Positions 1-61,942 are shown, counted from the first letter of the stretch. The stretch: 62,935 bases of DNA from Cyanophora paradoxa CCMP329 (GCA_004431415.1 QPMI01000442.1:1-62935); one strand, 5' to 3'. Notes: generated by a model not told the origin, from the letters alone. Translations and numbers: made by a program.

Positions 1-13
1 TGGAGCCAGAAAT

Positions 14-210
14 TAAGTTTACCATATGGTAAACTTAGGGTGTGGTAAAGTTGTGCTGTTTGCGTTACACCACTGTAAAGTCACCAGGGTAAAGTCGCCG
101 GGGTAAAGTCAGGGTGGTAAAGTTGTGAAAAGCGGGGTAAAGACGTCGGTGTAAACTCGCCGAGGTAAAGTTGGCGAGGTAAAGACGTCGGGGTAAACTC
201 GCCGAGGTAA
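14..210. repeat. Array of ~12 GGTAAA(G/C) motifs at ~14-bp spacing, starting with a perfect 24-bp palindrome; resembles DNA-transposon subterminal repeats
   Basis: Seen: TAAGTTTACCATATGGTAAACTTA (14-37) is its own reverse complement. (G)GTAAAG/(G)GTAAAC recurs at ~28, 44, 75, 88, 102, 116, 136, 151, 165, 178, 192 and (partially) 206. The subterminal role is inferred from CACTA biology and the nearby transposase. Confidence 0.75.
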
Positions 211-447
211 TGTTGGTTTCGGTGCAGCGGTTCACTTTTTTACGTTTTTTTTGCTTTTTTTTATTTTTTCTGTAAAAGCTATCTATAGCAGCCCATCTTC
301 AAGCGATACTGCGCGCGAGCTCTATCCTAGAGCTAGCTAATCGGTTTGATGAATGCTTCGTATTCCTGAAATCTGCAGCTGGGACGGAATTCTTCTTATT
401 TGCGTGCGCATGCGGACTGGCGGGATGCGCACCAGCCTGGCAGGTCA

Positions 448-1873
448 TTAATCAAGCTCATCTCCACCAACCTGGCTGCGGTGCGTAGTCATCTCCTCCT
501 CGTCCGACGACAAGCCGGACTCATCCCCATCAGGAATATTTGATGCCACTGCTGCAGCTGATTTCCCTGTGGCAAGTGTGACCAGCAGGTCCAGTGGCTC
601 TGAACGTGATGAAGATCCTTGCTGAAGTGTCACGTCCATTGCAGTCTCCTCCTGCATCATGATGTTGCAGCAGCGACACAAGGAGAGGAGAGTTAAAGAA
701 TGAACGAACCAGGAGACGGACATTAGCGTCCTTGAAGAAGCGACCGTAATCGGCAGTCGCTCTTTCGAACTCGGGATTCTGAACGCGATGGAGCGAAGAA
801 TCGGCTTCAAATCGGCGCGCGATCTCTGCCTCATCAGCCTCGTTCTGTCGATGCCGAGATTGCTGCTCGGCCTGCTCAGCCTGAAGCTTCTTCATGTCCT
901 CATCATTCGAATTCTGACTGTCTTGGCTGGCTGCGTTCGACTTTGCTCTCATCTCTTCCTCCTCCAGCTGCCTCTTGTCCTTCCGCTCTTCCTTTTCGGC
1001 TTCAAAGGCGTCGCGGTACACCCATTGCTCAATGACCCAGTCACCAGGCACATGAATCTACGGAATCATGAGTCAAAGTGCTAGCCGTCCAGTATTTTCA
1101 TATACTTCTTACCACGTCACTGCGACTCTTTGCCAGCAAATCGTGCAGCTTGTTGCTTGAGCCGAATCCGAGCTTATCAGCGACCAAAGTCGGTGGCGTC
1201 GGCGAAACTCCAAGCCAGTATGCCCTGAACAAAAGACGTCAAACATGTCGCGGATTTTTGCATTATTGATGCGCAATCACATCATATCCTGATCCGCGAC
1301 TGTGTCTTTCAGAGGAGTATACACTTCCGTAGGATGGATACTCTTGAAGATCGTATTCTTGCAAGCATGGCGCGTACCTGCATTGGAAAATCATAAACAT
1401 AATGCTTGATTGCGAGAAAGACAACAATTGAATGGCGCACGACCCCCAAACATGAAATGGCCTGGCTTCGTGCGGAATCCGAGGAAAGCGGGAACAAGGA
1501 AGCCTTTCTCGGTCTTCTCCCAGTGCGTAACGAGAACGCCGCCAGGGGTCCGTTCCTCGAGTTTGTACTCCAGCCGGAGTTCAGTACGAATAGCGTCTTC
1601 TGACCAGAAGGGGGGCTCGGCCTCGTGCACTTTTCCAGATCCAGATCCCGGAGATCCCGGCTGGCGGCGGGCGGCTGAAACGGGGAGTTTGACGAGGACC
1701 CGCTGATTCCGCTCCCCATTCGCCTCGTTGTGCACTTTCTGAGAGTCGAATTCCAACTCGTCTTTGAGCTTGAGAGCAGCTAGCACATCGCGACGGATTC
1801 GCTGGTCTTCCGTCTTGCTTCGCTTGGCTTTCGGAGCCTCCATCTGCGGCATATGCAAGTCAATAAGCGGCAT
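448..1873 (-). CDS. Spliced hypothetical protein (basic N-terminus, charged coiled-coil-like middle, acidic C-terminus)
   Basis: ORF fragments 1391-1927, 530-1051 and 448-834 can be joined by short GT-AG introns (e.g. gtaag...ccgtag before IHVPGDW). APKAKRSK is NLS-like. No recognised domain. Confidence 0.6.
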
Positions 1874-2110
1874 ATGCAAGTCAATAAGCAGACATATGCA
1901 GCCGGCAAGTTTCACCCACACCGCCAATGTCGAACTGGAATCAGCGAATCGTGATCAGCCCCCCCCCCCCCCCCCCCCCCCCGAAAGAGAAAATCCCGAA
2001 AGAGAACCCTCGAAAACCGCATGACAAAATAAGAATGCAAAAGCTCGCAAAGCAAAAGCGCAAAGCGGCAATGAGACGCAAGTGAATTCGCAAATGTGAC
2101 TGAGCGACTG

Positions 2111-2667
2111 CGTCCATCTCGAACACCTAGCTGCACCGTCAGGTTGCCGGGTTCCGGACCTGCGTGCACGTGTCGACTTCCCTCTTTGCAGAGGCCCGGG
2201 CGTACGCCGTCATCTCGAACACCTAGCTGCACCGGTCAGGTTGCCGGTTCGGACCTGCCGTGCACGTGTCGACTTCCTCTCTTGCAGAGGCCCGGGCGTA
2301 CGCCGTCCATCCGACACCTAGCTGCACCGGTCAGGTTGCCGGGTTCGGACCTGCCTGTGCACGTGTCGACTTCCTCTCTTTGCAGAGGCCCCGGGCGTAC
2401 GCCGTCCATCTCGAACACCTAGCTGCACGGTCAGGTTGCCGGGTCCGGACCTGCCCGTGCACGTGTCGACTTCCTCTTCTCTTTGCAGAGGCCCGGCGTA
2501 CGCCGTCCATGCCTCGAACACGCTAGCTGCACCCGGTCAGGTTGCCGGCGACCTGCCGGCACGGCTCCTCCTGTGCACGTCGACTTCCTCTCCTGCAGAG
2601 GCCCGGGCGTACGCCGTCCATCTCCGACACCTAGCTGCACCGGTCAGGTTGCCGGGTTCCGGACCTG
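2111..2667. repeat. Tandem repeat, ~97-105-bp unit, ~5.5 copies
   Basis: Unit cgtccatctcgaacacctagctgcaccggtcaggttgccgggttccggacctgccgtgcacgtgtcgacttcctctctttgcagaggcccgggcgtacgc starts at ~2111, 2208, 2304, 2403, 2504 and 2614. Copies differ mostly by small indels. Confidence 0.95.
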
Positions 2668-2699
2668 GCTCTGTCAAACATGGCTCTGATGTGTTGTTA

Positions 2700-6563: not shown

Positions 6564-6821
6564 CTCTGCGAACAGCGCTAAGTGACATTCTGTTGCTGTC
6601 TCATTGCTGCCTAGGAGCGCATCTCATCGCCTAGGTGCGCATCTCATCGCGTCGCTGTACCGGGCTTCGGAAAACTCCGATCGCACTACAGCAAGACTAA
6701 GCACACTCAGAAGAGCTCAAGATGCTTACGGATGGTCGAGATGCTCCACGCCGATGTTTTCAAACTGCGCCGTGTACCCCCCGGGGGGGGAAGAACCTGG
6801 AGCAGCGGTGCGAACCACGCC

Positions 6822-9800
6822 ATGCAGCGGTCAGAGCGACTGCGGTGCGAATGTCAGAAGTGTCAAGGCAAGTTAGTGCGTCCTGAGGTTTTCAATGCAC
6901 ATCAACTGCTAGCGCACACCGGATTCAGTAGCAGCGATCGGCAAGTCGAGTGCCCTTGCTCGCGCTGCAATGGAAAGCGCGTCTCGTCTTGGGTGCAAAG
7001 GATACATTTGCACCTAGACAAATATGGATCCAGTCTAGTAGAGCAAGCTGCCCGGAGAGCTCCTGTAAGCGATTTCGTTCCTTTCGTAGCCGAAGTTCTT
7101 GACGTACCGATCCCGACAATTTCGGTTCGAGCGGCACTAAGAAGACGACGATTAGCAGCCCCGGCAGCACTTCAAGGCAACGAGCGACAAACAGATTCCA
7201 ATTCGAAGCGCAAACGTGTCAACAATAAAGCCGCTCGTATGCTGCGAAGGCTGGGTAGATATACTGATCGTATTGGTCCTCAAGAAAACGGCAATGAACC
7301 TGGACATGAATCCAATATCGTCGATGGCATCGATGGCGATGATCATGCTCATGAGGCTTTCGACGACCCAGCCGCAGAGGAAGGCCAAGCGGACGACATA
7401 CGTGCAGACCCAGCTAGGCGGATCAAGTGGATTATGGCCTAGAGTCGGATCAGGACGCAGCGCTCGACGGCTCAGATGATGAATGCACTACCAACAGGCA
7501 GAATTTTTATTCTGAGCCTCTTTTTGAGGGCTGTAAAGTGTCGGTGCGTGCTGGAGCATTCAATACATTGCTTGATATTGGCTGTATTGGCTTTTTAACT
7601 GTTCTCTAGCGCATGGATTACATCACTTTTTGCCTCGCATTGAAGAAACGCTTTACACAAGCACCTGTTGAGATGTTTGCATCAATCAACGCGGCTGTGT
7701 CTCTCATCATTGAGGGCCAACAAACTGCAACGAGGCAGCTCGGGTCTTGGAAGAGAATGATTAGAGAAATCCAAGAATTCGTAGCGGTAAATAATCAACC
7801 ACTTTCAATTTTCGTGTTCGAAACGTTAACATTTCCCTGCTCAGCCTTCCATCACTTTCAGGACATGTGGGTATAAAGAGACAAAGCACAAGGTGGCGAT
7901 TTGCAAGACAGTCTGGATCGAAGACGGAACTGTTCCTCCAAATACAGTCTGCGAGTGTGGCCATTCAACCTATGCCGATGGTGTGGTGGGCTTCTTTTTG
8001 ATCCGACCCGGAGTTTTCAGCAGCTACTGAACAGTCCTTCGTATTATCCCCGGTTCCAGTGCGTTGATTTCGATTCTGTCGGTGCGGCCACGGCTGATCA
8101 AATTTACACAACGGCGTCCAGTTACGGCGTTCGAGCAATACAGATTGGGGGCGATCGTGTTCCAGATTACTATTTGCGGTCGCAAGAATCCGAAACCCAA
8201 CATCTCACTGGCGACTTTGTTCAATCAAGACTTTTCTCTTCTCTTCACGAGGAGGGCTGTGTGCGAATTTCGGACGGTCTTGGAGTTGTGTGCGCATACT
8301 CTACAGATTCCGCAGTGACGCACAGCTGGTCATTTCCACACCTACAGCTTATTCTGAAAACTGGACTCTAATGTCGTGTTTCTAGGTCCCACGGCGGCTC
8401 TTTCACCCCTGTGTTTGTGATACCTATGTCTGCGCATCCTAATTGGCGGTGCGTGATCATTATCTCGCTTTCCGCTTTTTCGCCACTTGTCTCACCCCGT
8501 TTCGCTCAGAACAGCAATGCAACGCCTTGTTTTTCTCATGGATGGGAAGCCGAGAAACTTCGATGGAATGTTCCGCGTATTCCTTACACCGTGGCTTGTT
8601 GCCAACCAGCCGCCGCCCCCAGGAGTCCCCGCTCCCGAAAGCCAAGGGTTTGCATGCCTTATAATCTGTCTCTTTCTTTCAATCATTCAATACCGTTGAG
8701 CAGAGTGGGGTTTTGCAATCCTCTCACCGGCAAAACTGACAAAGCATATTTCACAATGGCTCTCAATATCGATGACCTCCCCGGATGCGCAACGGCATTT
8801 ATGATAAGTTCGCGTAACGCATCCTTGCGCGGCTTTGTATTCCGGGACAGAAACCTAAACTTTCTGCAGCGTCGCACAGTGGCGAGCACGGCCATCCGCT
8901 TCGGAAGGTGGATTTCTGGAAAGCGCAGAGCAAAACCGCCGGGAAAAACATGTTTCAAGCACACGATCTCCCGCTCAAACACTGGATGCGGGAGTTGTGC
9001 GTACTGACCAAGGATCATGATAGACCCCCATCTGCCCGAACGGACTACTGCATGGTGCATCGAGCCGACGGACTGAAACGTTCCCACTGCAGCTGTTCTG
9101 ACACCCTTCGGTACAGCGAGCCGACGGACATGCTGTAGAGATCCAACGCCAAAGATGGTTTCGGAAAGAGATTACGCAAACAGCTTTTGTTCAATTTGTG
9201 AAAACGAAAACCTTCGGTAAACCTTTTAGAATGGATATAAGTGAACATCCTTCGAACGCGCCGTCCATTGAATTGTCTCTGACCAGGCGTTCAAGGCTTG
9301 CCGACTTTAGCGGAATGGCCACACTTTCGGCTCGGCCCCTATGCGACTTCAGCGAGAGCGACTGGGAGTTCCTGCGGCATGGCGAGCTGAATTTCGACAT
9401 GGGTGTTGACCGTTCAGGGCGCGGCATACTGACGAATTCCACCTCGTCAAAAACCGTCTGGCGGATGTCTTCAACTATCTTCGCGGCAACGCGAATAATG
9501 GTGATAAGCTCAGTCCTACCTCGATTCAGTGTGTCGTTGCATCTTCCAACTTCCATTCGTGGTTGATTTGCAACGTACAACCACTAACTTAATTACTTTC
9601 GTCAATGCGAAGGTTAAGCATCAACATGGATGTTCTTGTCCTTTACAGGGCGCCAAGCGAAGCGGAAATACGCTGCGCAGAGCAAAAGATGGAAAAGGAT
9701 CGGCGACTTTACGAAGCAGCTCTCCGAAATGGCAAGCCTCCTCCACGCCAGCCAGTCGACCTTGTCGCGGAACTCGAAGATAACGCGCCGTTTGCCTGGG

Positions 9801-11798
9801 AAGCCACTGAACGGCTGTACGATGCTATCGAGCGTGTTGCAAGGCGCGCACGATATCCGCACTTTTCAGGAACAACGGTAAGAATTAAATTCGCCAGACC
9901 CAATTTAAGTGAAGTTCGCAATTACAAATCGAGAAGAGCGAACTTTGATGTTTATAATTAGGACTAGCAGGAGTAACCATGTGTGCAGATGGACGAACCG
10001 TCGTTTTTACGGACTGGACGAAACTTTCAAAAGTTCGCTATTGCAGACGTGGCAGGCGACATTCTTCGCATGTGTCTTGATGCGGATATGGATAAACAGA
10101 ATTGCCTCTATCGGATCCTCGTAATCAATCAACTGGACGTCCTGCACGGCATTGGATCGAAGGTAACGTTGAGAAAGCAAAGGCTCCGACACGTCCGTGA
10201 CGTTGTAACAGATTGTTTATCCGGACTTCTTGCTTGAACTCCGCAAACTAGCAGTTCTTACAAGGGGTGCCGAACGTCACTACGTACCCGTGCCGTTCTG
10301 GACAATGTATGCAGCTCTCGTTGTTGATGCGTGCGCGAACCATTGGCTGTAGCTTGCCTGCAATCGGCTTAAATGTGCGAAGAGTGGACGGATGCATCGA
10401 GCTGGGGCCGGCGCCAGCAGTTTCTTCCCGTGGAACGGAGCGGGGCGGTCACAATGTGAAAGTTACTGCAGGAATCGGGCACAATCATCTCTGATAACGA
10501 GTGCGGCCCGACGAACGCAGGCAAGTTGTGAAAATATCTATTGCAATGCATATTGAATTTCGGTATTGGAGACGTTTGAACGGATTTTGTTTGCAGGAAA
10601 TGGGAGCCCTTGCCGTCCTGCAGCATGCAACAAGCGAGTTCTTGAACAAAATTCCACACCTTCTTGACACGGAAAAAGCCGGTGCCATTCGGAAGGGCAA
10701 ACGTGGCTACAGCTACGATATTCACACAGCTGGCGTCGAATACAGTAAGAAAACCAAACCAGAGCTGGGGTTCATTCTTGAAGGAAGGTTCGAAATTCGA
10801 ATTCGCAATTGCCGCCGCCAGCTGCAGATCTAGAGTCTAGATCTGCCCCACATTGATGACAAACTCGCATTAATTCTGCACAGTGATGACAATCACGATG
10901 AAGAGTACGGTGGCTTAATCTCTTCGTTTTGCGAGCGGGAGGAGCTGTTCGGAAATCCCCGTATCTGGCCGTTTTCTTCGACCTCTACGTTGACGAGCGA
11001 GAGCGATTCATAGAGACTAAAGGCACCTGGTTCGAACCATCCGGATATCGATCCGCCCTTGTTTGTTTCTTCGTGATCATGATCAGCATGCGCACCCAGG
11101 CCGAGCTGGGAATACACGATAGAACCTGTATTGCCGGAGGCTGGGCCCTGGCGTCCGATGGATCCGCACTTCTCCAGCATGCCTCGAGAATGGATTGGCG
11201 TCCCACCTCGAAAGGGAACTATGTATCCTTGCTTTTACGCCAACCACCACCTGTTCATTTCCAGCGAACTCTCAACCGACAAGCACGACAGCTCATTCAT
11301 GTCCTTTATCGCGATGGTTCCCCGACGGCAGCTCTGCGACGAGGGGGGCCATCCCTACCCTATCATTCCCCTCGGGCGAATGGGTTACCTCAGCGCCGAG
11401 GAGATCCAAGCGCATCCTGACCGGCGAGAGCCGGTCCGGCGCTATGCTCGTGCCAGAGGCCTTTTCGAGTTCGCCCACGCAAAGGCACCCGGGGTGCGTT
11501 TCGCATCATTCGAGCTGCGGTCTACCCCTTCTCAGCTTGCTCGTTTATGCCCAACTTGAACTGCGACCGAATCGACATCACCAAAGAGGACCCTCTCTGT
11601 CGTTGGGTGTGGCCTGACACCATCGAGCCTTGGCGCCTGATGCCTCTCCCCGACCACACATCGTCGCAATTCGAGCGTGTGCTCCCTAACCCAACAATCG
11701 ATCACCTTATCAGAGCTCAGCAGTGCTTCCCAGATAAGGGAGAGGTTAGGAACTTTCTTGGCGAGCGGCTGCCGTTCACGTCCCTGCGTAAAACGTAG
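6822..11798 (+). CDS. CACTA/EnSpm-type (TNP2, Transposase_21-like) DDE transposase, spliced
   Basis: Motifs occur in the TNP2 order: CECQKC...H and CPCSRCNG...HLHLDKYG (transposase-associated Zn motif, ~6846-7030); EPLFEGCKVS..ITFCLALKKRF (~7516-7650); Cys cluster; YSTDS (~8297, first catalytic Asp); SFTPVFVIPMSAHPNWR (the S.WPV...NLPP..R equivalent); NIDDLPG (~8771, D.P motif); CIELGPAPAVSSRGTERGGHNVK (~10395-10460, GP...ER motif carrying the catalytic Glu). The C-terminal extent is less certain. Confidence 0.82.
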
Positions 11799-11877
11799 CC
11801 TACAGCTGCATGCGCAAGACGTCATTTATGCAAATAATTAGCTTGTAACAAATTTATTATTTCTTGTGGCCTGCGGC

Positions 11878-12557
11878 ATGCAGCCGCAGAGCCTCGGAGG
11901 CCCGGGCCTTTCGGATCCGGTCCTGGTGATAAAGCACACAATCATGATTCTTCTGATCATGAGCCCTTCGAGCTCGTGATCATGAAGCCTCAGGCCTCGG
12001 TACCAGGGCGACTCGGCGAGCTCGACGCATGGCCAGTCATGATCAAAAAGCTCGTGTCTCGTAGCAAGCAACCCTCCGGGCCCAGCCTAGAAGACACACG
12101 GCGCTGATGATGGGAGCTCGAGCCTCGAGAAAGCCTCAGGCCTCCTTTGAGGCCCAGGGACATGCGCTGGTCATAGACTCTAGATCTGAGAGCCTCGGAG
12201 CTCGAGCTTGTGATCATGTGCATCGGATCATGACGCCGCTGAGCCTCACTGGGCTCAGGCCTCGGCAGCTCCCTTTGAGGCTCCGGATCCCTGATCATGA
12301 CTTAATGCAGCCGCAGAGCCTCGGAGGCCCGGGCCTTTCGGATCCGGTCCTGGTGATAAAGCACACAATCATGATTCTTCTGATCATGAGCCCATCGAGC
12401 TCGTGATCATGAAGCCTCAGGCCTCGGTACCAGGGCGACTCGGCGAGCTCGACGCATGGCCAGTCATGATCAAAAAGCTCGTGTCTCGTAGCAAGCAACC
12501 CTCCGGGCCCAGCCTAGAAGACACACGGCGCTGATGATGGGAGCTCGAGCCTCGAGA
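11878..12557. repeat. Near-perfect ~250-bp direct repeat (11878-12129 and 12305-12557) within a TCATGA/TGATCA-rich tract
   Basis: atgcagccgcagagcctcggaggcccgggcc...gagctcgagcctcgaga occurs twice, ~427 bp apart, with one visible substitution (cccttcg/cccatcg). Confidence 0.95.
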
Positions 12558-12783
12558 TCCGCATGATGGGCCGGAGCCACTAGGACGATTAATATTTAAT
12601 TATGCCTCTGTCCCCTCATGATCAGCGAGGACGGCTTATGCACATGATGATCATGACGTGCGTGCATGCGCGTGCACGTGTGAATGCCTGCAGGCGCAGT
12701 TGCTTCCTCATCAATTCAAATCTATTACTTCCTAATTCCTCAAAAAGCTACTCTCCTAATTCCTAATAAAGCTACATTCTCCC

Positions 12784-15700
12784 CTACACATAGATGCGAT
12801 TCGGCCTTTTGCAATTGGGTCGGCGGCACTCGGGGCATTTGCATATTTGCTCTTGGCTGCTGTCGTCGAGGGTTCCGACTGGAGGCCCGGAGGTCGTGAA
12901 TTCGAAGAATGTGGGAATGTGACTACGTCAAGCACGTACCGAATACTTCCACGTGAGGGATCACCTGGCTCAATGTCTAACAAAGCATAAAACCCAAAAC
13001 GATATCTGTCACCAACCATCACTGGTCGAAGCTCGACGTTCGGTTTGCAGCTGTGATTCTGCAGCACTGGCCAGCCCCCGGCTGCCATATCCAGCAACCT
13101 GCACGCGCAGGCCTGTTCAAGCAAGTAGGAAGGGTACTTGTAATTGGAAGAAAGAACGGAATAACCAGTTGAGAAGATGTTTCAGTCGAACATGCGTTGT
13201 GAGCCGCGTAGCTTTCGACCGGGAACTTGCTCTGGACCTGTTGCATTTGTTCCCCAGAAGCTCTCCCAAAAACATGCCTGCTCGTATTCTGGGGGCCCAC
13301 TTCGGGTTCCGGATGCCAACACCACAGTCATTCTGCTCGTCGAAAACTTCCACGGAAATACTTGAAGACTGACCCACGATCTTGAAGTTCCGATTTCCGC
13401 AATCGGTAGTGCCATAAGAGCAGTTGAAAGGAGTGCACTGGTATTCGGAAACAATGTTGTGGCAAGCAGGAGAATCGCGGCAAAGAAGCAGACGTGACCC
13501 CGTGGCCCCGAAGCAGACGCAGCAATCATGGCTCAGTTGTTCTCTCACTGCCGCGCGGAACAGCGCGGTCAAAAATCGAACAGCGCTAGAACAACGCTCA
13601 CGAACCGGCTTTTGGAATATGTGGAAACTGGAAGTTAGAATTGTAAGCCTTGATAACCTCATTCATCCGCTTTTTTGCCAGCTCCGATCCATCATGTGAA
13701 ATTCGGGCCTGGTTTGGAGGGCGAGTATGATAAAGTTTCTGAACGTGTTCCAGGATGTGCGGAGAGGACTCAATTCTGGAGTTCTGAGCTCGGACTTCCG
13801 AGATGTACCTGCAAACGAGCACATGAAAAGGAAGAATACGAAGCTGAACCCTCCCGAACCTGAGTTCAAGTTCTTTGATGTGCTCTTCAGGGGAAGCCGT
13901 GATATCGTGATTGATGAAACGCGCCATAAGGTGCAGAGTAAGTTTCTCCTTGAATTCTTCGAGAGAAATCGGATACGTGTACGAAGCCTGCTTCTCGTAT
14001 TCTTCCTCATGCAGCTGCCCTGTTGGGTACCACATCTGCAACGTCGGAGGCCTAACGGCGCCAGACGCGTCGAGAATGTCGTTCAGACATTCAGACAACT
14101 GGAGTAAGAAGTCGCCTGCATGGACTCCGCACTGCCGTTAAGCCTTCAGTACCGGTAAATTTCAGCAATGCGAGCAATTGAAATGCCGACCGACAATGTG
14201 AACGCGTCCTGAGCAGTTGACGTGGAGCAGGGAAATAAATCGATTCGACAGACACGGTCCTCAAGTCGTGTTTCCGGCAACCAGCGGTCACATCCTCGCA
14301 TGCTCGAAAGCATCTCACCAGCGATGACAGCCGAGTTTTGAAAGTAGGTCCCAAGAGAATCGTAAAAAACCATTCCCGGCCCATCCGAGAAACTCAAAAG
14401 CACGTGAGCAGTCCTTTGCGATGAAAAAAATAAGCGAAACGATATTGTTATACGTTAAAAGAAATAGATTACCAGTGGAATGCCTCTTCCAATACGAAGG
14501 CGACCCCGGGCGCTGGTTTGCGGTGCCGTTCCAGAGATGCAATCTTGGAGACAATGCTCTCAACGACATTTCCATGGAATTCTAGGGGTCGGATTCCAAG
14601 TTGACGCATCAACTGTTTCGCACCAACAATCTCCAAAACTGTTTATAATTATGCTCGAAATTAGGCAATGGAAGACTTTGAGATGATCATTACGCACAAT
14701 TCTGCATGTGGATGTCATTGAAAGGGTCACCCAGCGTGTGCTCTGGAAGAAAAGCGAAGCCTCCCGTGAATTCCGGCAACTCCGGCACGTCAGCAAGCGG
14801 ACGCTCAAGTCGTTCTGGTTCGAGGCGAAACACGTGAAATGCGTCCACGTTGTACGTTGAGTACAATCCTTGAGGGACAGTTCGTGGCCGAAGCCTTGCC
14901 TGCCTTGAAACTGAATCTGAATTCCCGTCGATCACCTTGTTGGCGCAGCTGAGAATTCCCAGGTAATTGAAACGACCAAGAAGTCTGCAGTGATGCACAT
15001 CGCGTTCCGACCATGGATGATGGGAAAGTATCTTTTGGAAAAACAGGATGTCAAAACAGCTTTGCTTAGAGTAAAAAAGACAGCAACTTGGACCCACCAG
15101 GAAGCCCGAGGCGCACTGAACCGCAAGACGGACGAAGATTGATTCGCGAATATCGTGTTCCATCACTTGATCACTAATAACAGCGTGCGTAATTCTGCAT
15201 TCATCACATTAAACAGAGAAGTAGGTGGAATCCATATGTAAGAAAAAAGGGAGCTCACCCCAGACTTCCGAAGTCGGCAAGCCCGGCTTCGCCGATAACC
15301 AGCTCTGTGCGTTGTGTATACGCCTCGAGCAACGCAATCACTTCTGGGAATTCGCTGAACATAACGGATCGGCACTGCTGAAGAAAGGATATCTGAAGTT
15401 TTTTGAAGCTTGCGAGAAACATCTGCAAGATTTCGAATCCGACGAGTTTCTTCAGACGAAATGGAAGCTGCCTCTCCATGAGAGCAAATATGAGGCTGAG
15501 CTGCCTCAGAACGCCACCTGAACCTGCTCCTATGTCCGCAATCACAACCTCTGGCGAGTCCAGCTCCAAAGTCGAGTTCCCTTCCGGCAAGACCCCCCGG
15601 AAATGAACTCTGCTATCGTTTTGATGTCAACGAGGCCGAGCTCGCCATAATTCAAAGATCGAGAGAGCGATCCAATGGATGAGGCTTTCATGTTGTCTTG

Positions 15701-18131
15701 TTTCTTCAGAATGCTGGGCAGACTCTCCTTCCGGATATGAAAACGCATATCGTACACCGCTCCAGCTTCATCCGCATAGCGACCATTTGTGACAACCTCA
15801 GCCGCGAGTTGCCAGCGCCGTGGAAAGTTGTCACATCGACTGAATTCAATCATGCCACGGGAGCAAGAAACGACAAGCGGGGCGACTTCGTTTTCTCGCT
15901 TCTTGCGCTTCACTGGCTTGTCGCCTTCGAATCACTCAGAATTAAAAAAACCAGAAACATTTAAGACGCTCGAACCGACATACGGAGCTGAAGCTAAAGA
16001 TTGGAGGACTCTCGCTGCAGCCTGACGCCTGCCACCGCTGCTGGCCGTGGTGCGCGATGCACTGGAGTCAACAGATGCGTCTGAGGAATTGGGATCGTCG
16101 TTCGCGCCGTATGGCTTCTGGCTGAAGTCTATTGCTGAGTCGTTTCCGGCTGAACGCGTTCTTTTAATTCCCTGGCCAGGCTCTGGTCCGAAATCAACGC
16201 CTGACACGCGGGGTATCAGTTCAGAGATGGAAACATGAGCCATGATTCATGCATATGCTCACCGGGTATATTCTGAGTAAGGTAAGCCCAAATTTGATGC
16301 GTGTTCGGAAGTCGACCAGACGGTGTGCGAGCGGAAGGGTCCTTCGAATTCTTGATAGCGTACCGGTACCACGACACCCTCCAGTTGCTCAACTGTGGAT
16401 GCGTTTTAGGCCGATCCGTACTGGGCTGCTGCGGTAGGTCGCTGCGCATGCTCTTCCGGCGCCGTTTGACGGTGACGGGCCGATGTGCAGCTAAAGGGCG
16501 TGGGAACTCATGATCATGATCACGATTCTCATGGCAGGTTGGCGAATTCCGTGCCGGAGAGCTGTTGGAAGAACTGCTTCCGCCTGGAAGCTGCAGCTGC
16601 TCTTCCGCCTGGAATAAGCGCTCGCTTTCGGACTCATCGCTCGCTGACTGTTCACCGTACGAAAAATCGGTCTTGGTACGATCAAGAGACCGCAAGTGAA
16701 GTTTACGAAGTTCCTCGGAATCGCCAGGGAGTCTGATCTTCAGAGCTAGAAGCCAGTCGCTGGCGACCGTCTCGGCATACTTCAATAGGGCACGCGAGCT
16801 CGATGTCGAAAGCTTCTTTACCCAATCCAGAAGTTCGGCGGGGTTTGCCGGATGGCCGACATTCACAGAAGGAAAATTCGCGTTTTCCAGCATATCGAGA
16901 ACGACATTGGCGGCTTCAGCAGTGATGTCTGATATGACCTGCAAAGATGATGGGATGACAACAGGTGTGCAGAGAAGGTTGAAGATTACCTTCCTGTGGA
17001 GGGCGTCGTCTGTTTTCACACCGAAGGATGCGAAGAAATCTGTTGGCAGCTGAGGAGCATCGTCGTCGCCGTCACTCGATGAGCTCGAGCTCGAGGAAGC
17101 GTACGGTGCTGCATTCGATTAAAAAGCGCGGATGAAGCCCGAGCACACGGGCAGATGCAGCTTTTCTTTCGCACATGAGAGCGGTGGAGAGAATGCCCTG
17201 TTTCCTCGAGCTGCTGCCCGAACCAAGACTGGCGGCGTCCTCGGAGAACGCGGTGCGACGGAGGGCTGCGAGGATAAGAAGAAGCCCGCACAGTCAAGTT
17301 TTAGAATGGCCGCTCACTCTCAGATGGTCAGATTCACGTGAAGGACTTGGGGGGTCCCAATGCTGCGCGAAGCTCAGATCTAGATTGCTGGAGGACGCTC
17401 AAATCGCTGGTTTCTAAGAACGGACGGAGCTCGTGGCACCAACTGGGCCCGGAGGGCAGAAAGGTGTGCGCGGATCCTGGAGCCGGAGGCGGGGGGAGCC
17501 GGATAGCGGGGGGAGCCGGATATAAGAAGCAATAAGAAGTAAGAAGTAAGAGTAAGAAGCTGTAAGCTAAGAAGCTGCGTAGAAAGAAGCTCATTGAAGG
17601 GGAAGAAGCTTTTGAAGTAAAGAAGCTCTAGACACAGCAATTGCAAGCAGGCAGCCAACCACGTGCACGGACCGAGCTCGTACGGCACTGCGATGGAAGC
17701 TCAGATTTCAAAGCGAAGGTATGGCGTGAGGTTGCCTTGAGTAAGAAAGGCTTCCCGCTCTGGTTCTGGTCCTGTACATGTGGCCACGCGTGTGTGAAGG
17801 GCGTGCATAGCGTATCCACATGTACATGCACGTACCGCGGCCGGTACGCCGCGGCCTGACTGGATTCTTGCAGCCTCCCATTGTTTGAGGACTTCTCGAA
17901 ACCGCTCGGGAGCACCTGGGATCATGCGGAGCCGGCCGAGCAGTGCCGCTTGGCGCTTCTTGTAGGTTTCGAGCGGAGCGTCCGGTGGGGCAGTTCATGT
18001 TCCTTTTGGGAAAGCCGCAAGACCAGAGCGATCGGCTTCAGGAGCTCGCACATGCGCTTCTGGAACAAAACCTCCTCATTCGAACTCTGGAAGGCGCCCA
18101 AGCGCGTTGGAGAGGTCAGAGATGTGGGCAT
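12784..18131 (-). CDS. Long spliced protein with a DOT1-like SAM methyltransferase domain and a C-terminal AWS-SET-postSET domain
   Basis: DOT1-like (~14820-15700): NYGELG..., VIADIGAGSGGVLRQL, LVGFEI, ITHAVISDQVM..., ILSHHPW. AWS-like: CCVC...C...CHN....QC...C..GTTDCGNRNF (~13395-13525). SET: GVGIR...IRAGMFLGELLGE, NHSCKPN (13038-13058), FYALLDIEPGDPLTWKY. Post-SET: CKCPECRRPNC. Exons join with no intergenic gap after correcting 1-bp homopolymer losses. Confidence 0.75.
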
Positions 18132-37835: not shown

Positions 37836-38340
37836 TGACCCTGAGCGTAGACCAAGCCCAGCCCTGATGATGAAGCCCTCAAAGTCGAGTCGTAGTCATG
37901 AAGCTAGTGAACACTAATCCCCCGCTAAGCCGAGACCCTCAAGATCCGATTATCATGATCTTGACGTGACTCTGGCCGACTCGGCAAGGGCCTTGTGATC
38001 ATGATGAACTTCAGAAGCACTACGCCGAGCCCCTCAGGCCTAATAATTAAATGATCATGAAGCCTTGAGCTCATGTGGCGGGGCCTCCGACTCGGCGAGG
38101 CTCGCAGAGCCTCGGAGTCGACAGCTTCCTTTCAAGTTTCAAGTTTGGCTCCCTGATTATCACATATGGTGATCATGACTCAGTGACTCGTGATCATGAT
38201 CAGTGACCGTCGCACACTGACGACGTCATGCCATGATGGAGGCTCTGAGGTCGAGCCTTACCGTACCCTAGTACTGAGTCATGATCAGGGCCTTGCTGCC
38301 TCGTAACCCCTTGACTCAGTGATCATAATGATCATGTCAT
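37800..38340. repeat. TCATGA/TGATCA palindrome-rich intergenic tract related to 11870-12670
   Basis: About 8 TCATGA by hand count; shares aagctcgtgtctcgta, gcagagcctcggag, cgactcggcgag and tgatcatgaagcct with the 12-kb tract. Confidence 0.75.
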
Positions 38341-38521
38341 GCCGCAGTGCGTACTAGCTATATACCCATTTCGCCATTCGCGATCGGTGCAAGCTTCAAT
38401 TGCAAGGAAAGATTCAAGTCCTTGGCAAGCACAAATAAGGTACATCGTACACTCTTGGCCACTGTGAATCTTTCGTAATGTAGTAAAACCCTGGCAGCAG
38501 CTCCGCCTGCACAGGCGCAAA

Positions 38522-44660: not shown

Positions 44661-45690
44661 ATGGAGCACGCTGTAGCTTGCAAGATAGGGCAGCATCAGG
44701 ACGAATGCGGTCCTACAATCACAAAGCGTGCGATGGATGACGGCCGCGGCAACATCAACGGACTTGTTCCGGCTTCGGTCGGTGATGACCACCAGAAGCG
44801 TGCTCGTACCGAAGGCAATGCGCCGGATTTTGAGGTTTCAAAGACTGGTGCGCGGCCGCTTTTAAATTGTTGATTGTGTTTGGATCTCTGAATTCCAATC
44901 TGGCTCTGCAGACACTGAGAGTGACGTGCTGGATGTCGCTTGCGCCCAGCCCCAGGTAAAGCTGCGAGTGTGCCGGTGTTGGGACTTCTGCTGGATCTTG
45001 GTCGAAGATTCTGATCGGACAAAGCAGCAGGAGCAGCGTGAAATAGTGGTAACCGATGTTCAGTCCGTGCCGGTTCCTGACGGCGATGCGATTCTTAATG
45101 AAACTGAGAATTCCAAGAATGATCTTATGGACAATATCGACGCACGTCGCGCCCAGCTCCAGGTATGGTTTTCATCATTCCCCCCGAGTTCACTTGCATA
45201 TGAATATAATGTGATGCATCTCCCAGGTGGATAATGCATTCGATCTCGAAACGTCAAAGGAGCAGGAGCAGGATGCAATCGTGGCGACCGGCGTTCAGCC
45301 CGTGCCGGTTCCTGACGGCGATGCGATTCTTAATGAAACTGAGAATTCCAAGAACGATCTTATGGACAATATCGATGCACGTCGCGCCCAGCTCCAGGTA
45401 TGGTTTCTCTTTCCCCCCCTGAATTCACCTGTTTACGAATTGAATTCGACGCACCTTCCAGGTGGATAATGGAGTCGATTCCGTGCGGGCTGCTGCCGGC
45501 GATGCGAAGCTAAATGTGCTTGAGAATGCCAAGAACGCTGTCATGGAATTCGAAGATGCACATCGCGCCTCTTGCCAGTCCCAGGTTTGGCTTTAATAAA
45601 ACGACAGACTCAGATTGACGCTTTTTGCAGGTTGATGATGGATTCGATTCGAATTCAGTGACGTCAGAGTAACAGCAGCAGCAGTGAGCT
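44661..45690 (+). CDS. Small acidic protein built from tandemly duplicated exon+intron units
   Basis: VPVPDGDAILNETENSKNDLMDNIDARRAQLQ|gtatggttt occurs at ~45058 and ~45293 (period ~235 bp), with a third degenerate copy at ~45470-45585. Confidence 0.6.
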
Positions 45691-46120
45691 GGAGCAGTAT
45701 ATGCAGAGCAGCTCAGGCAAGCAAGCTCTAGTCACTTAGCAGAGCATCTCAAGCAGAGCAGCTTAGGCAAGCAAGCTCAGGCAGGCAGAGCACATTCCGC
45801 TTATGCACTTCGGTCGAGAAAGACATGTTTTCGGACATTTAATCTGTTATCGTGAAAAACCTTGCATAATTGCATATTTAATCTGTTATCGTGAGAAACC
45901 TGCAAGGATACACTTAATAAGAATTTGCAAGGGCGCCTGCCACCCTGAATCCTTGATTGAGAGCCCCTGATATGTGCACATGCACTGAGAAAATATCTAA
46001 TTGATTCCACCGCACTCCGCGCACCCCCCCCCCCCCCCCCCCCCCTCTTCGCAGCTTCTCATCCCCCCATTTGTATGCTCTACCCCAACTGGTTCGGTAG
46101 CGCGGGAAACGTTAACTGCC

Positions 46121-48099: not shown

Positions 48100-49411
48100 T
48101 TACATTGCTTCTGGCTCTACACAAAAGGTTTTATTCCGCCACTTCAAACTCTGCCGTTTGAAGTGCCCTTTACAGCTTTCGGAAAGTAAAACAACGTCTG
48201 CTTCGGACCACGTCCAAGGTAAATCCAATTGCAGCACAGCCTCGGAACGGACGCGAAGAAGTTTCGAGCGCAGCTCGTAAATTTCACCTGCATGGGCCCT
48301 TTTAGTTTCCGCGAAGAAAGACTTCGAACGAATAGATCGCACCAATCAAATTGGATGGTAGTGTCTGTATCATGATCAGGGACGGCGTCTCAAAATGATA
48401 TGCATCAGTGAGAGTCACGCTCGTAAGCTTTGGCATGCGGTCCGATGAGATAAGCTCAAGAATGGCGGGGTGAAGCGCCAGTGCTCCTGCTGATAGCTCG
48501 ATGAAGCAACTCGCAAGTTTGCCAAAAATCAGGTCCACCGGCCAACCCGTCGGCGGAACCACTTCACGGAGGCTGAGGTGGTCGCACACCATACGCGCAA
48601 CCCAGGAAAAGACTTTGACAGTCTTTTCATCCCGGAGATTCCAATCTTGAAGCCAAAGCACAGAGATTGATTCAAGGTGCGGTAACGCCGCAAGCGCACG
48701 TTCAAGATGGTCAGGCTCCGGGTCCACTATAGTGGTGTCCAGATGGCGCAATCTTGTCAAGGGAAAGAGAGTTGACATTGAAAAGACTGTGCAGAAGTGT
48801 CGAGGGAGGTTCAAATGCGATCCCCATGCCATGTGTACACGTCCAGGCGCGGAAGAATCTTCGAATCCCATTTTCATGTAGGACGTCGGCATATCGACGT
48901 CAACGTGGATAGCATTGCACCAACGTCCTTCAGGAATCCGGAAGTATTTCTTCGCGATGCGAACTGGAACTCCGTCCTGAGGAGTGCGTTGATCGCCCCT
49001 CTTGGCGGGAGGTCCTCGGAGCCTGGTGCTCTTTCAGTTAGTACCTGTACAGCAGCATTTCTTCAGCTAGTACAGCAGTTAGTAGAGAGTCTCGTGCATG
49101 CCTTAAACTCACACTCGTCTTGTCCATATCCAGGCTGATCAAACGCCACTGCCTGCAGACTACCTCCAAACGCATGCGCTCGACAGTGGACAATCCAGAC
49201 AAAACTTGCATCCAGATTTCGTCGGGAAGATCGATCTCTACACTTCGGGCGTCATGGGCTCTGATGCGTGGATTTCGAATTCAGGCATCGATATCACCCT
49301 GACCAAGGTGAAAATATCGCATCCGCACCTCTCCGCTTGCGGTGTTGTATTAACGTAAATTTGAGCATTCTTCTTCTTCCTCATCATGGATCGCGTCTCA
49401 ATCTTTCGCAT
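48100..49411 (-). CDS. F-box / LRR-like protein D
   Basis: Reverse translation of ~49135-49235 gives IDLPDEIWMQVLSGLSTVERMRLEVVCRQWRLI, a canonical F-box (not in the ORF track); followed by LTRLRHLD, LPHLESISV and MPKLTSVTL. Confidence 0.85.
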
Positions 49412-53679: not shown

Positions 53680-55479
53680 GATCATTCCTTGGGCGATGCG
53701 CGTTGAAAAACGGTGACTATGATGTGGATTCGTGGGCGTGGTCACAGTTAAAGAGATATGCTTGCACAACGTTGCTGAATCCCCTTGCGAAATCCTCGTC
53801 ACACGCTTGTTTCAAATGAGTCTCGACATCCACCCATAAAATGCGGAAGTCGTATGTGGCCTGTGGTTAAACCCGTGACCTTCGAAACATGAAGAAACAG
53901 ATATGAGTTACCCTGATAAGGTTATTGTGGGTATTGATGTATGCCTCTGCCGCCGGCATCCAGCCGTCGTCCTCTTCATTTTGCGTTGCTGTCTCCCACT
54001 GCAGAAAACCAGAAGTTGAGATCTGCAAACGTTGCACAAAACAATAGCAGTAAACGTACTTCATAGATAGCTCGGGCAGTTTCAAGGCAATGCCCTCGCT
54101 CGCGAGTCATTTCCATAAGCACCAGCTTGGCAGGTCGAGTTCGTATTCCCACATTTACGTTTGCAGGTCGTTCATAATATGGTTTCAGCACATCCGCAGC
54201 CTTCTTGAGACCCATTTCAGCCACCCGGAATCGGATGTAAAGATGCTGCGAAGCCATTTAAAACACAAATCCTGTCCGCGATGCTGTCTTTGCTTGCAAA
54301 ATATCCTTCGAAACCTTTTACCTTAAGAAGGCTCTGATCCTTGTTGTTGAGATCGTCCCATTTTCGTGGGCGCCGAAACAGTGCCATGATGTTACTGATC
54401 TGAGCTTCTGAGATCACAGGTTCCAACAGCCACTCGCGAATGATGCCAGCGACGTGTGTCGGCAGAACAGGTGAACGTGTCGCAACGGGTCGCTTGTTGG
54501 AGAAGTCTGAGAAAGCGTTGCTTCGTGTTTCGTGATTCAACAAGAAAATGCGGGTGAAGGCAAAGCGAAGCGGGTGCCCAGGAGGAAAAATGGGTCGCAG
54601 ACGTGTGTTTCCGCGCCATGGGCCACTTCGGGTTGGAACCCAGCCATCAGTCTTCATCGTGCGCGACGCAGCCATCCACGTTTCCACAGATAAGCCGCAA
54701 TCGACTTCGTTGGTTATCACGTGAGCAAGAACTCCTGGTCGACGACACGGCCAAGGAGAGAGTAAAATACCATCACGCCAGTGCCGCGAGAAAAATCCGA
54801 CTTGGTCGCGGCAATGCCAACTTAGCTGAATGTCGTCCGGCCGTTGGACGAAACGAATGAATGTTGGGAAGGTGGTCTTGAACGGCGGGAATTTGTTGCA
54901 GGCTTGGCATGGATGAACAATATCACCGTGTTGCACGAAAAAATCTTTGCAGCAAAGACCACAGGCTTCTTTGCAGGCACATTTTACTGGAATTGCTTTC
55001 GGAAAACCGGAGTTGATCAGACGTGCTGTCACAGGATCGCTCATGTCGAAAGCGGGTGCGGGATTGCCGACATCCTCTGCAGTGGTCCTGAAAACACAAG
55101 GTCAATAACTCTAAAGCACTCAGCACACAAATGTTATTATCCACACCTATGCCTGCCGGCGCCAGTGCTGCCGGCCGCTGCCGATATCGATGGCGATACG
55201 GTCGTATCCAGCGACGTCGACTGCACCTGGTTTGCATTCTCCGCTCTCTCCCTGTCGGATGGCATGAGCGAAAACATTGTTGTCTTTCACTTCGAAAACA
55301 TACCCAGCTGACTCTTGAAACGTGTGCTCAAGATCTAAGTCTGCTGCCTCCGCTGCTGGTAGCACTTCGGGCGACAGGACGTCGACGTGCTCACCGTCTG
55401 GAGATTTAACGTCCCATGTATCATGTGCAGCCGAAGGGCCGAAGAGGATTTTCCTGATACCGCCTAGCATTGGCACCAA
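53680..55479 (-). CDS. Hypothetical protein of the unknown Cys-cluster family, paralogue 2
   Basis: CACKEACGLCC...PCQACNKFPPFK, HCRDQVGFFS, DGWVPTRSGPWRGNTRLRPIFPPGHP, LKKAADVLKPYY and ATYDFRILW all align by eye with the 21.4-23.4 kb gene. Confidence 0.78.
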
Positions 55480-55530: not shown

Positions 55531-55632
55531 CCCCCCCCCCCCCCCCCCCCCCCCCCCTACAACAACAACAACAACAACTAAAACAACAACAACACACACA
55601 CGCATGTACACACACACACAAACACATCAACA
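55531..55632. repeat. Poly-C tract followed by (ACA)n/(AC)n microsatellite between divergent genes
   Basis: C-run at 55531-55557, then acaacaaca... and acacac... Confidence 0.9.
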
Positions 55633-55633
55633 C

Positions 55634-56309: not shown

Positions 56310-56377
56310 TTCTAGGTATACCGGAATGGAAATGGAAATTTGATTAATCTTGTCTGAAAACAAAGCTTGCGCTCCCG

Positions 56378-56530: not shown

Positions 56531-56751
56531 AAGCTGGTCCCCCCAGGAGCCAACATCGGCCAAAGGAGCGTCGGGCAAGTACCCCCCCCCCCTCGGGTTT
56601 TCCGGCAGCAGGTACCCCCCAACCGGTACCGGTCCGGTTGAATTCGTCGAGTCGCAGTTGTCAGCTCAAACTCGTACTAGGTGGCGCGTTCTAGTCGCGT
56701 GGTCAGCCGTGCTTACTTGCAAGCGAATACGGAGTGCTAGTATAATAAGCG

Positions 56752-58520: not shown

Positions 58521-58593
58521 TGAAATATTCCTTCCTATAAGGAATAGGGCCTTTTTAAGTGCCGTTTTTCTTGCGTCGTATTTCGAAGTCCTG

Positions 58594-60985
58594 ATGTCAA
58601 AATCAGAGACGCTCGCACAACATATGCATCACTCTATCGGCGCTCACGTGCACCATTCTACGCCGACGTCGGAGCAGTGCGAACCTGTCGATTCTGGTGT
58701 CCCATTGACAGCTTGGAGCCATTTGTGCTTGGACGTTTTGGACGCTCTTTTTGATGTCATCGGTCTCGCGGGCGTCCTCGACGCTCCTGATCAAGGACTG
58801 CTTCGTGTTTCCCAATACTTTATGCAGTCGTTCAAGAATCATCGTTGGAAAGAACTCCAAATTGGGACGCTCTGGGCCGACACCAAAGCTCTCCAGAAGC
58901 TGCGATGGATTCGACATCGTTTTGCAAACGGGTCTCTGAAGCTCAGGAACCCCCTTCAACTATCGATCACTCTTCACACTCAACCGGATATGTCTACGGC
59001 AACTCAAGCTGCCCAAGAAGTTCTCGGTCTTCTTCGTTGCTTATCGCGAGGAGGAATTCGCCTGCAGTCCTTTTTTCTCGAGTGTTCTGTTCCAGACTCC
59101 CACGCATTCCGCTCCGCTGTAATCGAAACACTCGGGAACGGTCTCTCGGCTGTTCGTCTTGACATTTGTGAGCATCGTAATATCCGGCACTTCGAGGAGT
59201 ATCTTCGACATACTGAAACTGATTCGGTGCCACATCTCAGCTGCGATTTTACCGAGCCGTCCAATTTCAGCGCATCGATTCCATCGATGCAACATTTCAA
59301 CACCTTCCTATCTTTTATGCAGAGTTTGCATCGCCTTCAGTCGCTTGATTTGCGTTCACATGGCATCGGCGGATTTTTCGAGCTGGATGATGTTCTACGA
59401 ATTGGAGCTGCAACGCGGGCACTCGTCTGTCTTCGTGTTCCTCTGCAGAATGTCACCGCTCGAACTCCTTCACAGCTCGTCGCTGCCCTTCCAAACCTGC
59501 AGGTGCTTTGAATGCATCCCACTCAACAACAAGTCTTATTTGCACAGGAACTGGAGATTCGGGGTGAAAACGTTCCTTTTTACGGCGCGGAAAACTCTCC
59601 ACCTATTGCTAGCAGTGGCAGTGTCAATTTGAAAACTCTTGGTAGCTTCGTTGGATTATTACTGGTGTCATACGTTCATTTATCTGAACTTCCACGTGCG
59701 CAGTGCTCGACTTTCCAATGCGAAAGGGGATGTTCACTGCGATCATAGCCTCGATTTTTGGTGTGATCGATTATCTGTCCGACACTGAAGACTCGGACAA
59801 AGAAATCGCGAGCTCATCGCGAACACTTCCAAATGTCATTTTCGGCGGTTCCGGGCCCCCGCAGACTGGATTTGGTATTTCGTCGTCTCTTATGGCCTTG
59901 AAGCATGGGGTCGTCTTCGATTGCAACGATATTTCTGCGATTGCTAAACTGGTCTGAAAGTATTTTTCAAACATTAAGCACGTTCTCTGACCTGAGTTCA
60001 GGAATCTTGTGCATTTCATGTTCCTTGCACATGGCTGGCGAAGCGAAATCTGGATTACTTTTCCCAATCAACATGCAAGATTCCGTTCAGCAGATCACTT
60101 CAGAGCATGAGTTATGTGATTTTGAATCACCATGAATCTAATCGACTTGCGTCACTTTCTTCAAATATACCGTCTCTCCTACATCTCCGCCTCACGTTTC
60201 ATCTGCGCTTCCGTCGCATATACGATGACATGGCGGAGCCGAATGAAGGGTTTATTGCCCATGAGAATCAGCAAGAATGCCTGTCTGCATGGAGTGATGC
60301 CCTCAGCTCTCGCCATCTCAGTTCCCAGTTAAAGAGTGTCAGCCTTCACCTTGTTGGAGCTCGAGATTATGTTTCGGTGGCACTTGCCGAACTCATCTTT
60401 GCAGCAAGGAACACGTTGCGTGAGTTTTGTTACGTGGGTGAACCTTTTGGAGAACCGGTCGCGATTGCTCTCTCGACATGCAAACGTCTTCAACGAATCC
60501 ATGTCGTTTTCGAAAACTTTAGACCTTCCAAGCTCTCAACAGAATGGCCGATAGGTTATCAGCCGCTTTCGGAAGCCCTGTCTTCCCCGCAGGAGAGCGA
60601 TGCATCTGTTCCATTGGATATTTGGATGCAAGAGCTGATTCCTTTGGCGCGATGCAAGCCGGACGTGCTGGCAGAGTGCAGTATTGCTTTCAGTCGTTGC
60701 CGCGGTAGTGTCACCGACGACTATGCCGCGCGTCTGCTTCACATTCTCCCATACTGGACGATTTCGGAGTGTTTGTGCGGAGGCCATACTGGACGAAATG
60801 CCTGCGGCTACGTCGTGTACACGGAGGGAAACGAGAAATGCCGTCTTCTGGACTTCCGTCAGCAGGCGGCGCAGCGCTCGTGTGATTTTCATTTTCGGGA
60901 TACATATGCAGCTATGTTAAGAGGACTTTACGGAGAAATGACTTGCATGATGCCGTCGTGTAATGAATGTCTTCCGGCTTCTTAG
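58594..60985 (+). CDS. F-box-like / LRR-like protein E
   Basis: WSHLCLDVLDALFDVIG...LLRVSQYF...RWKELQI parallels protein A (LSDFPEDLL...AWPELQL); LHRLQSLDL, LPNLQVL, IPSLLHLRL; the C-terminus CKRLQRIHV...LPYWTI parallels protein B (CANLERVDL...LPGWHI). Confidence 0.72.
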
Positions 60986-60999
60986 AACAGTGTACTAGG

Positions 61000-61735
61000 A
61001 CCAATCATGATCATGTACTGGAGTTAACGTTCCGATGGCCGGGCACGGGTCGTGATCTTGATCATGAGCCCCGGGCCCCGGGGCATGGCTGCCCTTCCTG
61101 CAGCTCAGCGGCTGTACATGTGATCGCACCTCGCCGCCGGCGCCCCGGGGGCTACTTGCCTCTGCCACTGCCGCCGTGCCACGCGCATGTACGGTGCTGA
61201 TCACGAATCATGCTCATGATCATGAGGCCCGGGCCCGGGGCTTGGTTGCCCTCCCTGCAGCGGAAGTCACATTTTCCCCGCCTGGGCCCCAGGGGCCTCC
61301 GCGGGCTCCCTTCAAGGCTTCCTAAAGATCTCAAAGTCTGCCAATGCCGCACTGCCACATGTTCACTGAGTCAGTGCTCATTACGAGACATGACATGATC
61401 ATGAGCCCCGGACCTGGCTGCCCTGCCTCAGGGCCTGCAGCTGTGATCCCACCGGTACCTCGCCCCGGGGGCCGGCGCCTCCGAGGCCGGGCGCCCTGAG
61501 GGCTCTAGCTCCTGGAGTCCTCGCCTCTGCCACTGCCGCCGTGCCACGCGCATGTACGGTGCTGATCATGAGGCCCGGGCCTGGGGCTCGTCATGCCATG
61601 ATGAGTCATGATATGATCATATAAGCCCCGGGCCTGGCTGCCCTAGGCCTGCCTTCAACTGTAGCCGATGTCACGATCGCAAGTCGTGGTACGGTCCGAT
61701 GATCATTATCGATATCATTCATGAGCCCCGGGCCC
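61000..61735. repeat. Third TCATGA/CCCGGG palindrome-rich tract with an internal ~46-bp direct repeat
   Basis: About 8 TCATGA by hand count; gcctctgccactgccgccgtgccacgcgcatgtacggtgctgatca at ~61158 and ~61523; repeated catgag(g/c)cccgg. Confidence 0.8.
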
Positions 61736-61942
61736 GGCTTCAATTTCTCCGGAGTTATGATTGCTCATTGTACACTAGCTTTTTTCCAAATAGCCATACG
61801 GGGCATTGTTGTATTGGCAGAGACCACAAATGCGACCTGAACGCTGGTAAATATAGGCTATTATATAGCCCGGGCCAGGACATTCGTTGCTAGGAGGGCT
61901 GGGACCTACCCAAACTGCCTTCCGAGTTCTAACTAGCCCCCC

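Follow-up and report, generated by a model that had tools for sequence, protein, structure and literature searches.

Background

Transposons of the CACTA/En-Spm type have terminal inverted repeats (TIRs) that start with CACTA (or CACTG) and end with TAGTG (PMC4158355). Enlarged members exist in algae; the EnSpm elements of the red alga Chondrus crispus measure 16-20 kb and have 4-5 open reading frames (ORFs; cited in PMC6431247). Fungal KDZ, EnSpm, Plavaka, Helitron and other DNA transposons encode TET/JBP dioxygenases (PMC12730594), and true giant cargo carriers are found in the Starships, which have a tyrosine recombinase as 'captain' (PMC11162782). The stretch analysed here, referred to as the window, is eukaryotic DNA with introns, 62,935 bases long, from Cyanophora paradoxa CCMP329 (QPMI01000442.1). 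An earlier note on this DNA had described it as a candidate for a single CACTA-like element of more than 60 kb, with a TNP2-type transposase, a motif array at its left end and a cargo of about 20 genes. The reading preferred here, which is given about an even chance, is that of a low-GC gene island in which the left 12 kb would be a divergent CACTA-like transposon unit; the other genes would be residents of the island and not demonstrated cargo, and the block has possibly been duplicated as a whole.

Low-GC, repeat-rich compartments with fast-evolving gene families include the AT-rich isochores of some fungi and subtelomeric duplicated blocks. The window is similar to these in being a compositionally distinct island with orphan genes and expanded families, transposon genes and possibly multi-copy blocks. 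It differs in that the edge of the window shows no telomeric repeat, and in that the genome paper describes no low-GC compartment in Cyanophora (PMC6704402). The published assembly, of a haploid genome with a mean GC content of 67.6%, comprises 712 contigs with an N50 of 214 kb and was base-corrected by majority rule only (PMC6704402). The length of the window compared with this N50 suggests that it is an entire short contig which breaks inside the array.

Results and discussion

Base composition of the window

The window is a low-GC gene island within a high-GC genome. The GC content is about 51% overall and lies between 44 and 62% per 500-bp step nearly throughout, the exceptions being a block at 33.95-37.8 kb (70-81%) and the last 1 kb (65-68%). 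In the low-GC part, all ORFs judged plausibly coding have a higher GC content at first than at second codon positions, and their content at third positions (GC3) is 0.45-0.60. The composition that the genes had been claimed to share is thus found in all island ORFs.

A GC content this far from that of the host could also point to foreign or extrachromosomal DNA, such as an integrated fragment of a giant virus, an episome or a contaminant eukaryote. The high depth of the contigs (see below) and the orphan genes, without relatives in protein, representative or metagenome searches, agree with such an origin. It is nevertheless very improbable, since the introns are spliceosomal (GT..AG), host-type high-GC segments are found both inside the window and at its end, no viral hallmark domain was found among about 96 ORFs, and DNA runs from 2012, 2019 and 2024 contain this sequence.

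A putative transposon unit at the left end

The left edge of the island is formed by an array of a short motif (Table 1). The heptamer GGTAAAG is found seven times in exact form at 44-184, within an array that extends from 28 to 215; the whole window has 11 copies compared with 4.2 expected, and none of 100 shuffles reached 11. With a degenerate 15-mer nine units were obtained at 38-214, with a period of 14 bp and all on the + strand, and no comparable units were found elsewhere in the 62.9 kb on either strand. An inverted unit at 18-24 pairs with the unit that follows it (GTTTACC-ATAT-GGTAAAC at 18-34). The left-end array described in the earlier note is thereby confirmed. Any terminus lies outside the window, since the window begins within the array. 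A telomeric origin of the array was rejected, as GGTAAAG is no permutation of TTTAGGG or TTAGGG.

The gene closest to the array, gene L, has no match in Pfam and is possibly an accessory (ORF2-like) transposon gene. Homologues of one of its exons, of exon 1 of the transposase-like gene and of the orphan gene B2 (see below) were searched for among public proteins of 0.55-1.75 times the query length, and none was found, self included. The tandem repeat to the right of gene L is followed by 4 kb with short ORFs only.

The large spliced gene that comes next is probably a very divergent CACTA/TNP2-like transposase. Exon 1 is similar to the Pfam domain Transpos_assoc (PF13963; E 3.9e-5), with 24.2 bits against a gathering score of 27.7, which is not reached. 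It has an N-terminal CxxC/CxxC zinc finger like that of Transpos_assoc and is followed by exons with the motifs DG.., ..DDLPG.. and HTDEFHLVKN. Compared by eye, the corrected exons resemble TNP2 proteins in the order of their blocks, namely a CKTVW...CECGH ribbon (CxxC...CxC), ..ISDGLGV.., ..NIDDLPG.. and ..HTDEFHLVKN...

No catalytic domain was recognised. Exon by exon, there was no Pfam match to Transposase_21, Plavaka or KDZ at E values up to 10. A phmmer search with 7877-8368 against 1.84 billion representative proteins gave only two FG-GAP-like repeat proteins, both judged spurious. When the catalytic core was searched for by features in the ESM atlas, all scores were 0.85 or lower; one cluster tagged as Plavaka scored 0.83 and was regarded as a lead only. 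Metagenome scans with a 44-nt unique word and with a transposase exon gave no match.

The RNA splice, the diverged paralogues and the conserved patches in frame together support a real, constrained gene family. An RNA contig joins position 9528 to 9613, that is across an 84-nt GT..AG intron (9529-9612), and connects two predicted exons in frame. Diverged paralogues are represented by DNA contigs with a lower depth, which align to 7201-8308 and 9469-9760 with 86-90% identity; another paralogue contig is colinear in patches of 36-49 nt only, up to about 11.6-11.7 kb. In the predicted frames the conserved patches translate to TKHKVAICKTVW, FQQLLNSPSYYP, HTDEFHLVKNRL, CFYANHHLFISS and PNLNCDRIDITKE. 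Contigs of several diverged paralogues are found in both DNA and RNA runs, and the family is multi-copy. The RNA depth of the window's own copy is about 2 over 7.2-13.2 kb compared with 11-14 for a paralogue, and a relative of the transposase is clearly expressed elsewhere in the genome. The transcript contig of this paralogue, 2.4 kb in length and found in two RNA runs, has only a 36-nt zinc-ribbon patch (7881-7916) in common with the window. The TNP2-type transposase claimed earlier is thus retained as a spliced multi-exon transposase-like gene with diverged paralogues, whereas its catalytic domain is not recovered.

Single-base deletions in the assembly break the ORFs and explain part of the poor recognition of domains. 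Public short-read contigs aligned to 7201-13200 revealed 11 one-base deletions in the window, about 1 per 550 bp (Table 1), and correction with a local script lengthens the exons. This rate also accounts for the share of words found in the 14 DNA runs (2012, 2019 and 2024, each with 8-14 kb), which is constant at 0.93-0.94. After correction there is a minimal-intron path from 6732 to 11797 with seven GT-AG introns (local script); it was not accepted as proof that the gene is intact, as the path ignores the RNA-supported intron. The deletions were also considered as proof of multiple copies and dropped, since with base correction by majority rule only, indels may persist everywhere. At about one deletion per 550 bp, gene calls in this region need prior correction with short reads.

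Several features of the left 12 kb are those of CACTA/En-Spm elements. The transposase-like gene is large and split into several exons, and its N-terminal zinc finger matches Transpos_assoc below the cut-off; a further gene is located between this one and the end of the element; the subterminal region contains many repeats of a short motif; and diverged copies make up a family. The differences are that the window has no CACTA/TAGTG terminus and no duplication of 3 bp at the target site (TSD), the terminus lying outside it and the second end being missing, and that the subterminal repeats are found at one end, with no inverted cluster in 62.9 kb (the other end may be outside the window). The catalytic domain, furthermore, escapes Pfam Transposase_21, phmmer and ESM features, and by eye there is a V at the third acidic position (HTDEFHLVKN) and no Cys pair after the second Asp.

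Because the array is restricted to 28-215 and is accompanied by a Transpos_assoc-like zinc finger, a spliced gene of about 5 kb and paralogues, the left 12 kb are read as a mobile unit. The unit would be recognisable by its end array, by the accessory-type orphan gene L and by the spliced transposase-like gene, the family of which would consist of diverged and partly better-expressed paralogues. The remaining 50 kb would then be two sub-islands, split by a high-GC host-type gene, with fast-evolving orphan genes, two SET genes and one F-box gene as island residents. A duplication of the whole block, of the segmental or the chromosome-end type, would be favoured over transposition of a 60-kb unit.

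Possible multiplication of the block

A number of observations weigh against an island with a small transposon unit at its left end. Some of them concern the mean k-mer depths of Logan short-read contigs in DNA run X2, where the depth of a contig is not a copy number. Contigs identical to the window cover 7201-11907 at a depth of 1539-1804, and one contig without branches, 10,977 bp long and spanning 12,528 to about 23.5 kb, has the same depth as the transposase. Contigs of diverged paralogues (at least three) have a depth of 94-143, which gives a ratio of about 17-fold. Since a paralogue in a haploid genome cannot be present below single copy, either the block is found in about 12-18 copies or the paralogues come from a minor genome. 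The latter is hard to square with the presence and the higher expression of the paralogues in separate RNA runs. If the ratio of depths is a copy number, multiplication has involved the transposase together with 11 kb or more of its neighbours, as predicted for a giant element. The window also starts exactly inside the 230-bp end-type array, as the contig of a collapsed multi-copy element would, and the composition of the transposase is common to all island genes. Finally, the right end of the putative 12-kb transposon was nowhere found, which leaves a unit of 12 kb undemonstrated as well.

A multi-copy block would fit both the start of the window in the array and a window of 62,935 bases that is a whole short contig. 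The block may be multi-copy, in the form of a duplicated block or, less likely, of a giant element. A simple tandem unit is unlikely, since the two ends of the window do not overlap.

The giant element would be a CACTA-like DDE transposon of at least 60 kb in about 12-18 near-identical copies, with some 20 intron-bearing genes, including the two SET genes and the F-box gene, as cargo. In addition to the equal depth, the start within the array and the uniform composition and GC3, it is favoured by the Pfam scan of the island, in which neither a housekeeping gene nor another transposon protein was found, and by the enlarged EnSpm elements and transposon-borne TET/JBP genes mentioned above. It is still considered rather unlikely. 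The 62.9 kb hold no inverted GGTAAAG array, TIR pair, long-range inverted repeat, TSD or visible terminus, and no dispersed DNA repeat that links the left end to the rest of the window. Neither an inverted array nor a meaningful inverted repeat was found at the places searched for a right end, namely 11.85-12.65 kb, the sequences flanking the high-GC block and the right border of the island at 61.9 kb. The words CACTG/CAGTG and GTACTAG near the boundaries were rejected as ends, as they are present at chance frequency. A second terminus that encloses the cargo is thus not present in the window.

The content of the block and its paralogues also argue against a giant element. A host-type gene with high GC interrupts the window for 4 kb near its middle. 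The two pairs of internal paralogues are only 35-46% identical and therefore old and not recent captures. Whereas patches down to 36 nt were aligned on the transposase, none of the diverged paralogue contigs aligns to the SET exon (12.6-13.2 kb), a weak sign that older members of the transposase family have no SET neighbour. Skipping joints, as expected from empty sites, were not found apart from the patchy paralogue (14 DNA runs, an internal stretch, one strain label). Moreover, no DDE transposon of such a size is known, and efficiency reportedly falls with the size of the cargo (PMC6431247). The single element of more than 60 kb proposed earlier is therefore not upheld.

The comparison with large or cargo-bearing elements gives a similar picture. 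The EnSpm elements of Chondrus are likewise algal and of CACTA type, with extra ORFs and a length well above the usual, and they have defined ends and 4-5 ORFs, whereas in the window no ends are seen for the claimed 20 or so genes in 60 kb. The TET/JBP transposons are DNA transposons with a mark-modifying enzyme to escape silencing, and EnSpm-type transposases are among their carriers. They differ from the window in having a single enzyme gene in elements with defined copies, whereas here SET ('writer') domains adjoin the transposase and their co-mobility is putative. The TET/JBP-bearing EnSpm, Plavaka and KDZ elements are a precedent for the idea of a transposon that modifies chromatin, one that the earlier note had missed. 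With the Starships (PMC11162782) and the giant eukaryotic transposons (PMC6431247) the window has in common tens of kb of non-transposition genes that possibly move as a block; the captain, the defined boundaries and the empty sites of the Starships are not seen here.

Sub-islands and motif-rich stretches

The palindrome TGATCATGA is found 18 times in the window, and 15 of these copies are located in three motif-rich stretches (Table 1), in which GAGCCTCGG and GGCCCGGG are the other short words. The first of the stretches holds a direct repeat of 253 bp (11878-12130 and 12305-12557, 99.6% identical) with twice the contig depth. The sequence to the right of about 61.9 kb has 65-68% GC and G-rich 83-bp repeats. 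The stretches bracket two sub-islands, each of which has one member of paralogue pair A and one of pair B.

This arrangement could mean that the window is a patchwork of unrelated mobile or duplicated cassettes, which entered, independently of one another, a silent low-GC region tolerant of repeats, with the TGATCATGA-rich stretches at 11.85-12.65, 37.8-38.35 and 61.0-61.75 kb as seams. The weak RNA signal over 7.2-13.2 kb is in line with a silent region. A patchwork is nonetheless quite improbable, as the three stretches share only words of 10-16 nt and no common element, no cassette has recognisable ends, and one unbranched contig spans 12.5-23.5 kb at constant depth.

The high-GC block, with a low-GC half on either side, has the appearance of a normal host-type gene inside the island. 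The gene contains a VELIDITDSESDE stretch; the block has no match in Pfam and no bounding inverted repeat.

Neighbouring genes

In the Pfam scan of about 96 ORFs, the neighbouring genes gave two domains of the SET type and a single F-box; no further domain was found, nor any other transposon-type protein, viral hallmark or housekeeping gene. Both SET domains score above the gathering score and have NHSC-type motifs (NHSCKPN; IINHG) and terminal Tyr motifs (..LTWKY; ..VLYDY). After correction of indels, SET 1 ends with ..GDPLTWKY and is followed by a post-SET-like exon with CKCPECRRPNC. An exon upstream in the same gene, called DOT1-like, has a class-I S-adenosylmethionine motif, VIADIGAGSGG, and gave no match in Pfam. 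Three domains similar to histone lysine methyltransferases had been proposed; the two SET domains stand and the DOT1 call is not confirmed. From the five F-box-like genes of the same proposal one remains, with an exon at 49041-49280(-) above the gathering score, and the other four lack a Pfam match and resemble neither each other nor the confirmed F-box in phmmer comparisons. The idea that the element writes its own chromatin marks and directs SCF ligases against host defence proteins is supported by the presence of the domains only, and the proposed mechanism is speculation resting on domain names.

The two dispersed pairs of paralogues, A1/A2 and B1/B2, are present as described earlier. A conserved motif, DGWVP..G..RGN.RL.PI..PGHP.R..F.R, is found in family B. 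The AlphaFold model of B2, made with an alignment of two rows, had a predicted local distance difference test score (pLDDT) of 34 and was unusable.

An upstream motif said to be common to nearly all genes, for which no sequence had been given, was not found; several palindromic 8-mers are strongly over-represented window-wide, namely CATGATCA (37 copies), AATTCGAA (20), CAATTGCA (20) and GAGCTCGA (22). Other repeats are long tracts of poly-C (22-27 nt) and poly-G at 1960-1982, 46025-46045, 55531-55557 and 62162-62178 and a tandem duplication of 235 bp at 45020-45479. Scans of the window with Rfam and for tRNA genes gave no match.

Table 1. Position and properties of the features in the 62,935-bp window.
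Feature	Position	Strand	Properties
Subterminal-type motif array	1-230	+	About 10 units (C)G(S)NGRGGTAAAS, 14-bp period; truncated by window start
Gene L	451-1954	-	Orphan, at least 3 exons; 3' end abuts array; acidic coiled-coil-like C-terminus
96-bp tandem repeat	2111-2667		5.5 copies
Transposase-like gene	6732-11797	+	Multi-exon, spliced, weakly transcribed; 8 assembly indels break ORFs
Motif-rich spacer	11850-12650		TGATCATGA, GAGCCTCGG, GGCCCGGG; holds 253-bp direct repeat
SET-domain gene 1	12759-15931	-	SET at 12759-13181(-), 27.1 bits (Pfam cut-off 22.4); NHSCKPN
Paralogue A1	19343-21367	+	Orphan, multi-exon; five exon pieces with 41-46% identity to A2
Paralogue B1	21505-23110	-	Orphan; 39% identity to B2; no Pfam match
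SET-domain gene 2	23641-24714	-	SET at 23641-23814(-), 25.7 bits (Pfam cut-off 22.4); ..ARIINHG.., ..GEEVLYDY
High-GC (70-81%) block with host-like gene	33950-37800	+	GC3 0.71-0.77; EPGAPAIKRE and RPVFVKREPEAP repeats
Second TGATCATGA-rich stretch	37800-38350		
Paralogue A2	38798-40842	-	Pair with A1
F-box gene	48305-49280	-	F-box exon 49041-49280, then leucine-rich exon; F-box-like 36.4 bits, F-box 34.1 bits
Paralogue B2	53720-55101	-	Pair with B1; no homologue among public proteins
Third TGATCATGA/GCCCCGGGCC-rich stretch	60980-61900		Right edge of low-GC island
One-base deletions	7416, 7994, 9335, 9416, 10476, 10956, 11055, 11490, 12156, 12869, 12956		From short-read contigs

Conclusions

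Should the ratio of depths reflect the real number of copies, a block of 60 kb that carries a transposase at one edge was recently multiplied about 17-fold. It would then be either a giant DDE element of a new kind or a block from a chromosome end that has been homogenised. A giant element, if real, would be by far the largest known cargo-carrying cut-and-paste element and the first with chromatin 'writers' outside fungi. If the window is an island only, the compartment could hold the machinery by which the alga controls transposons or by which transposons escape control.

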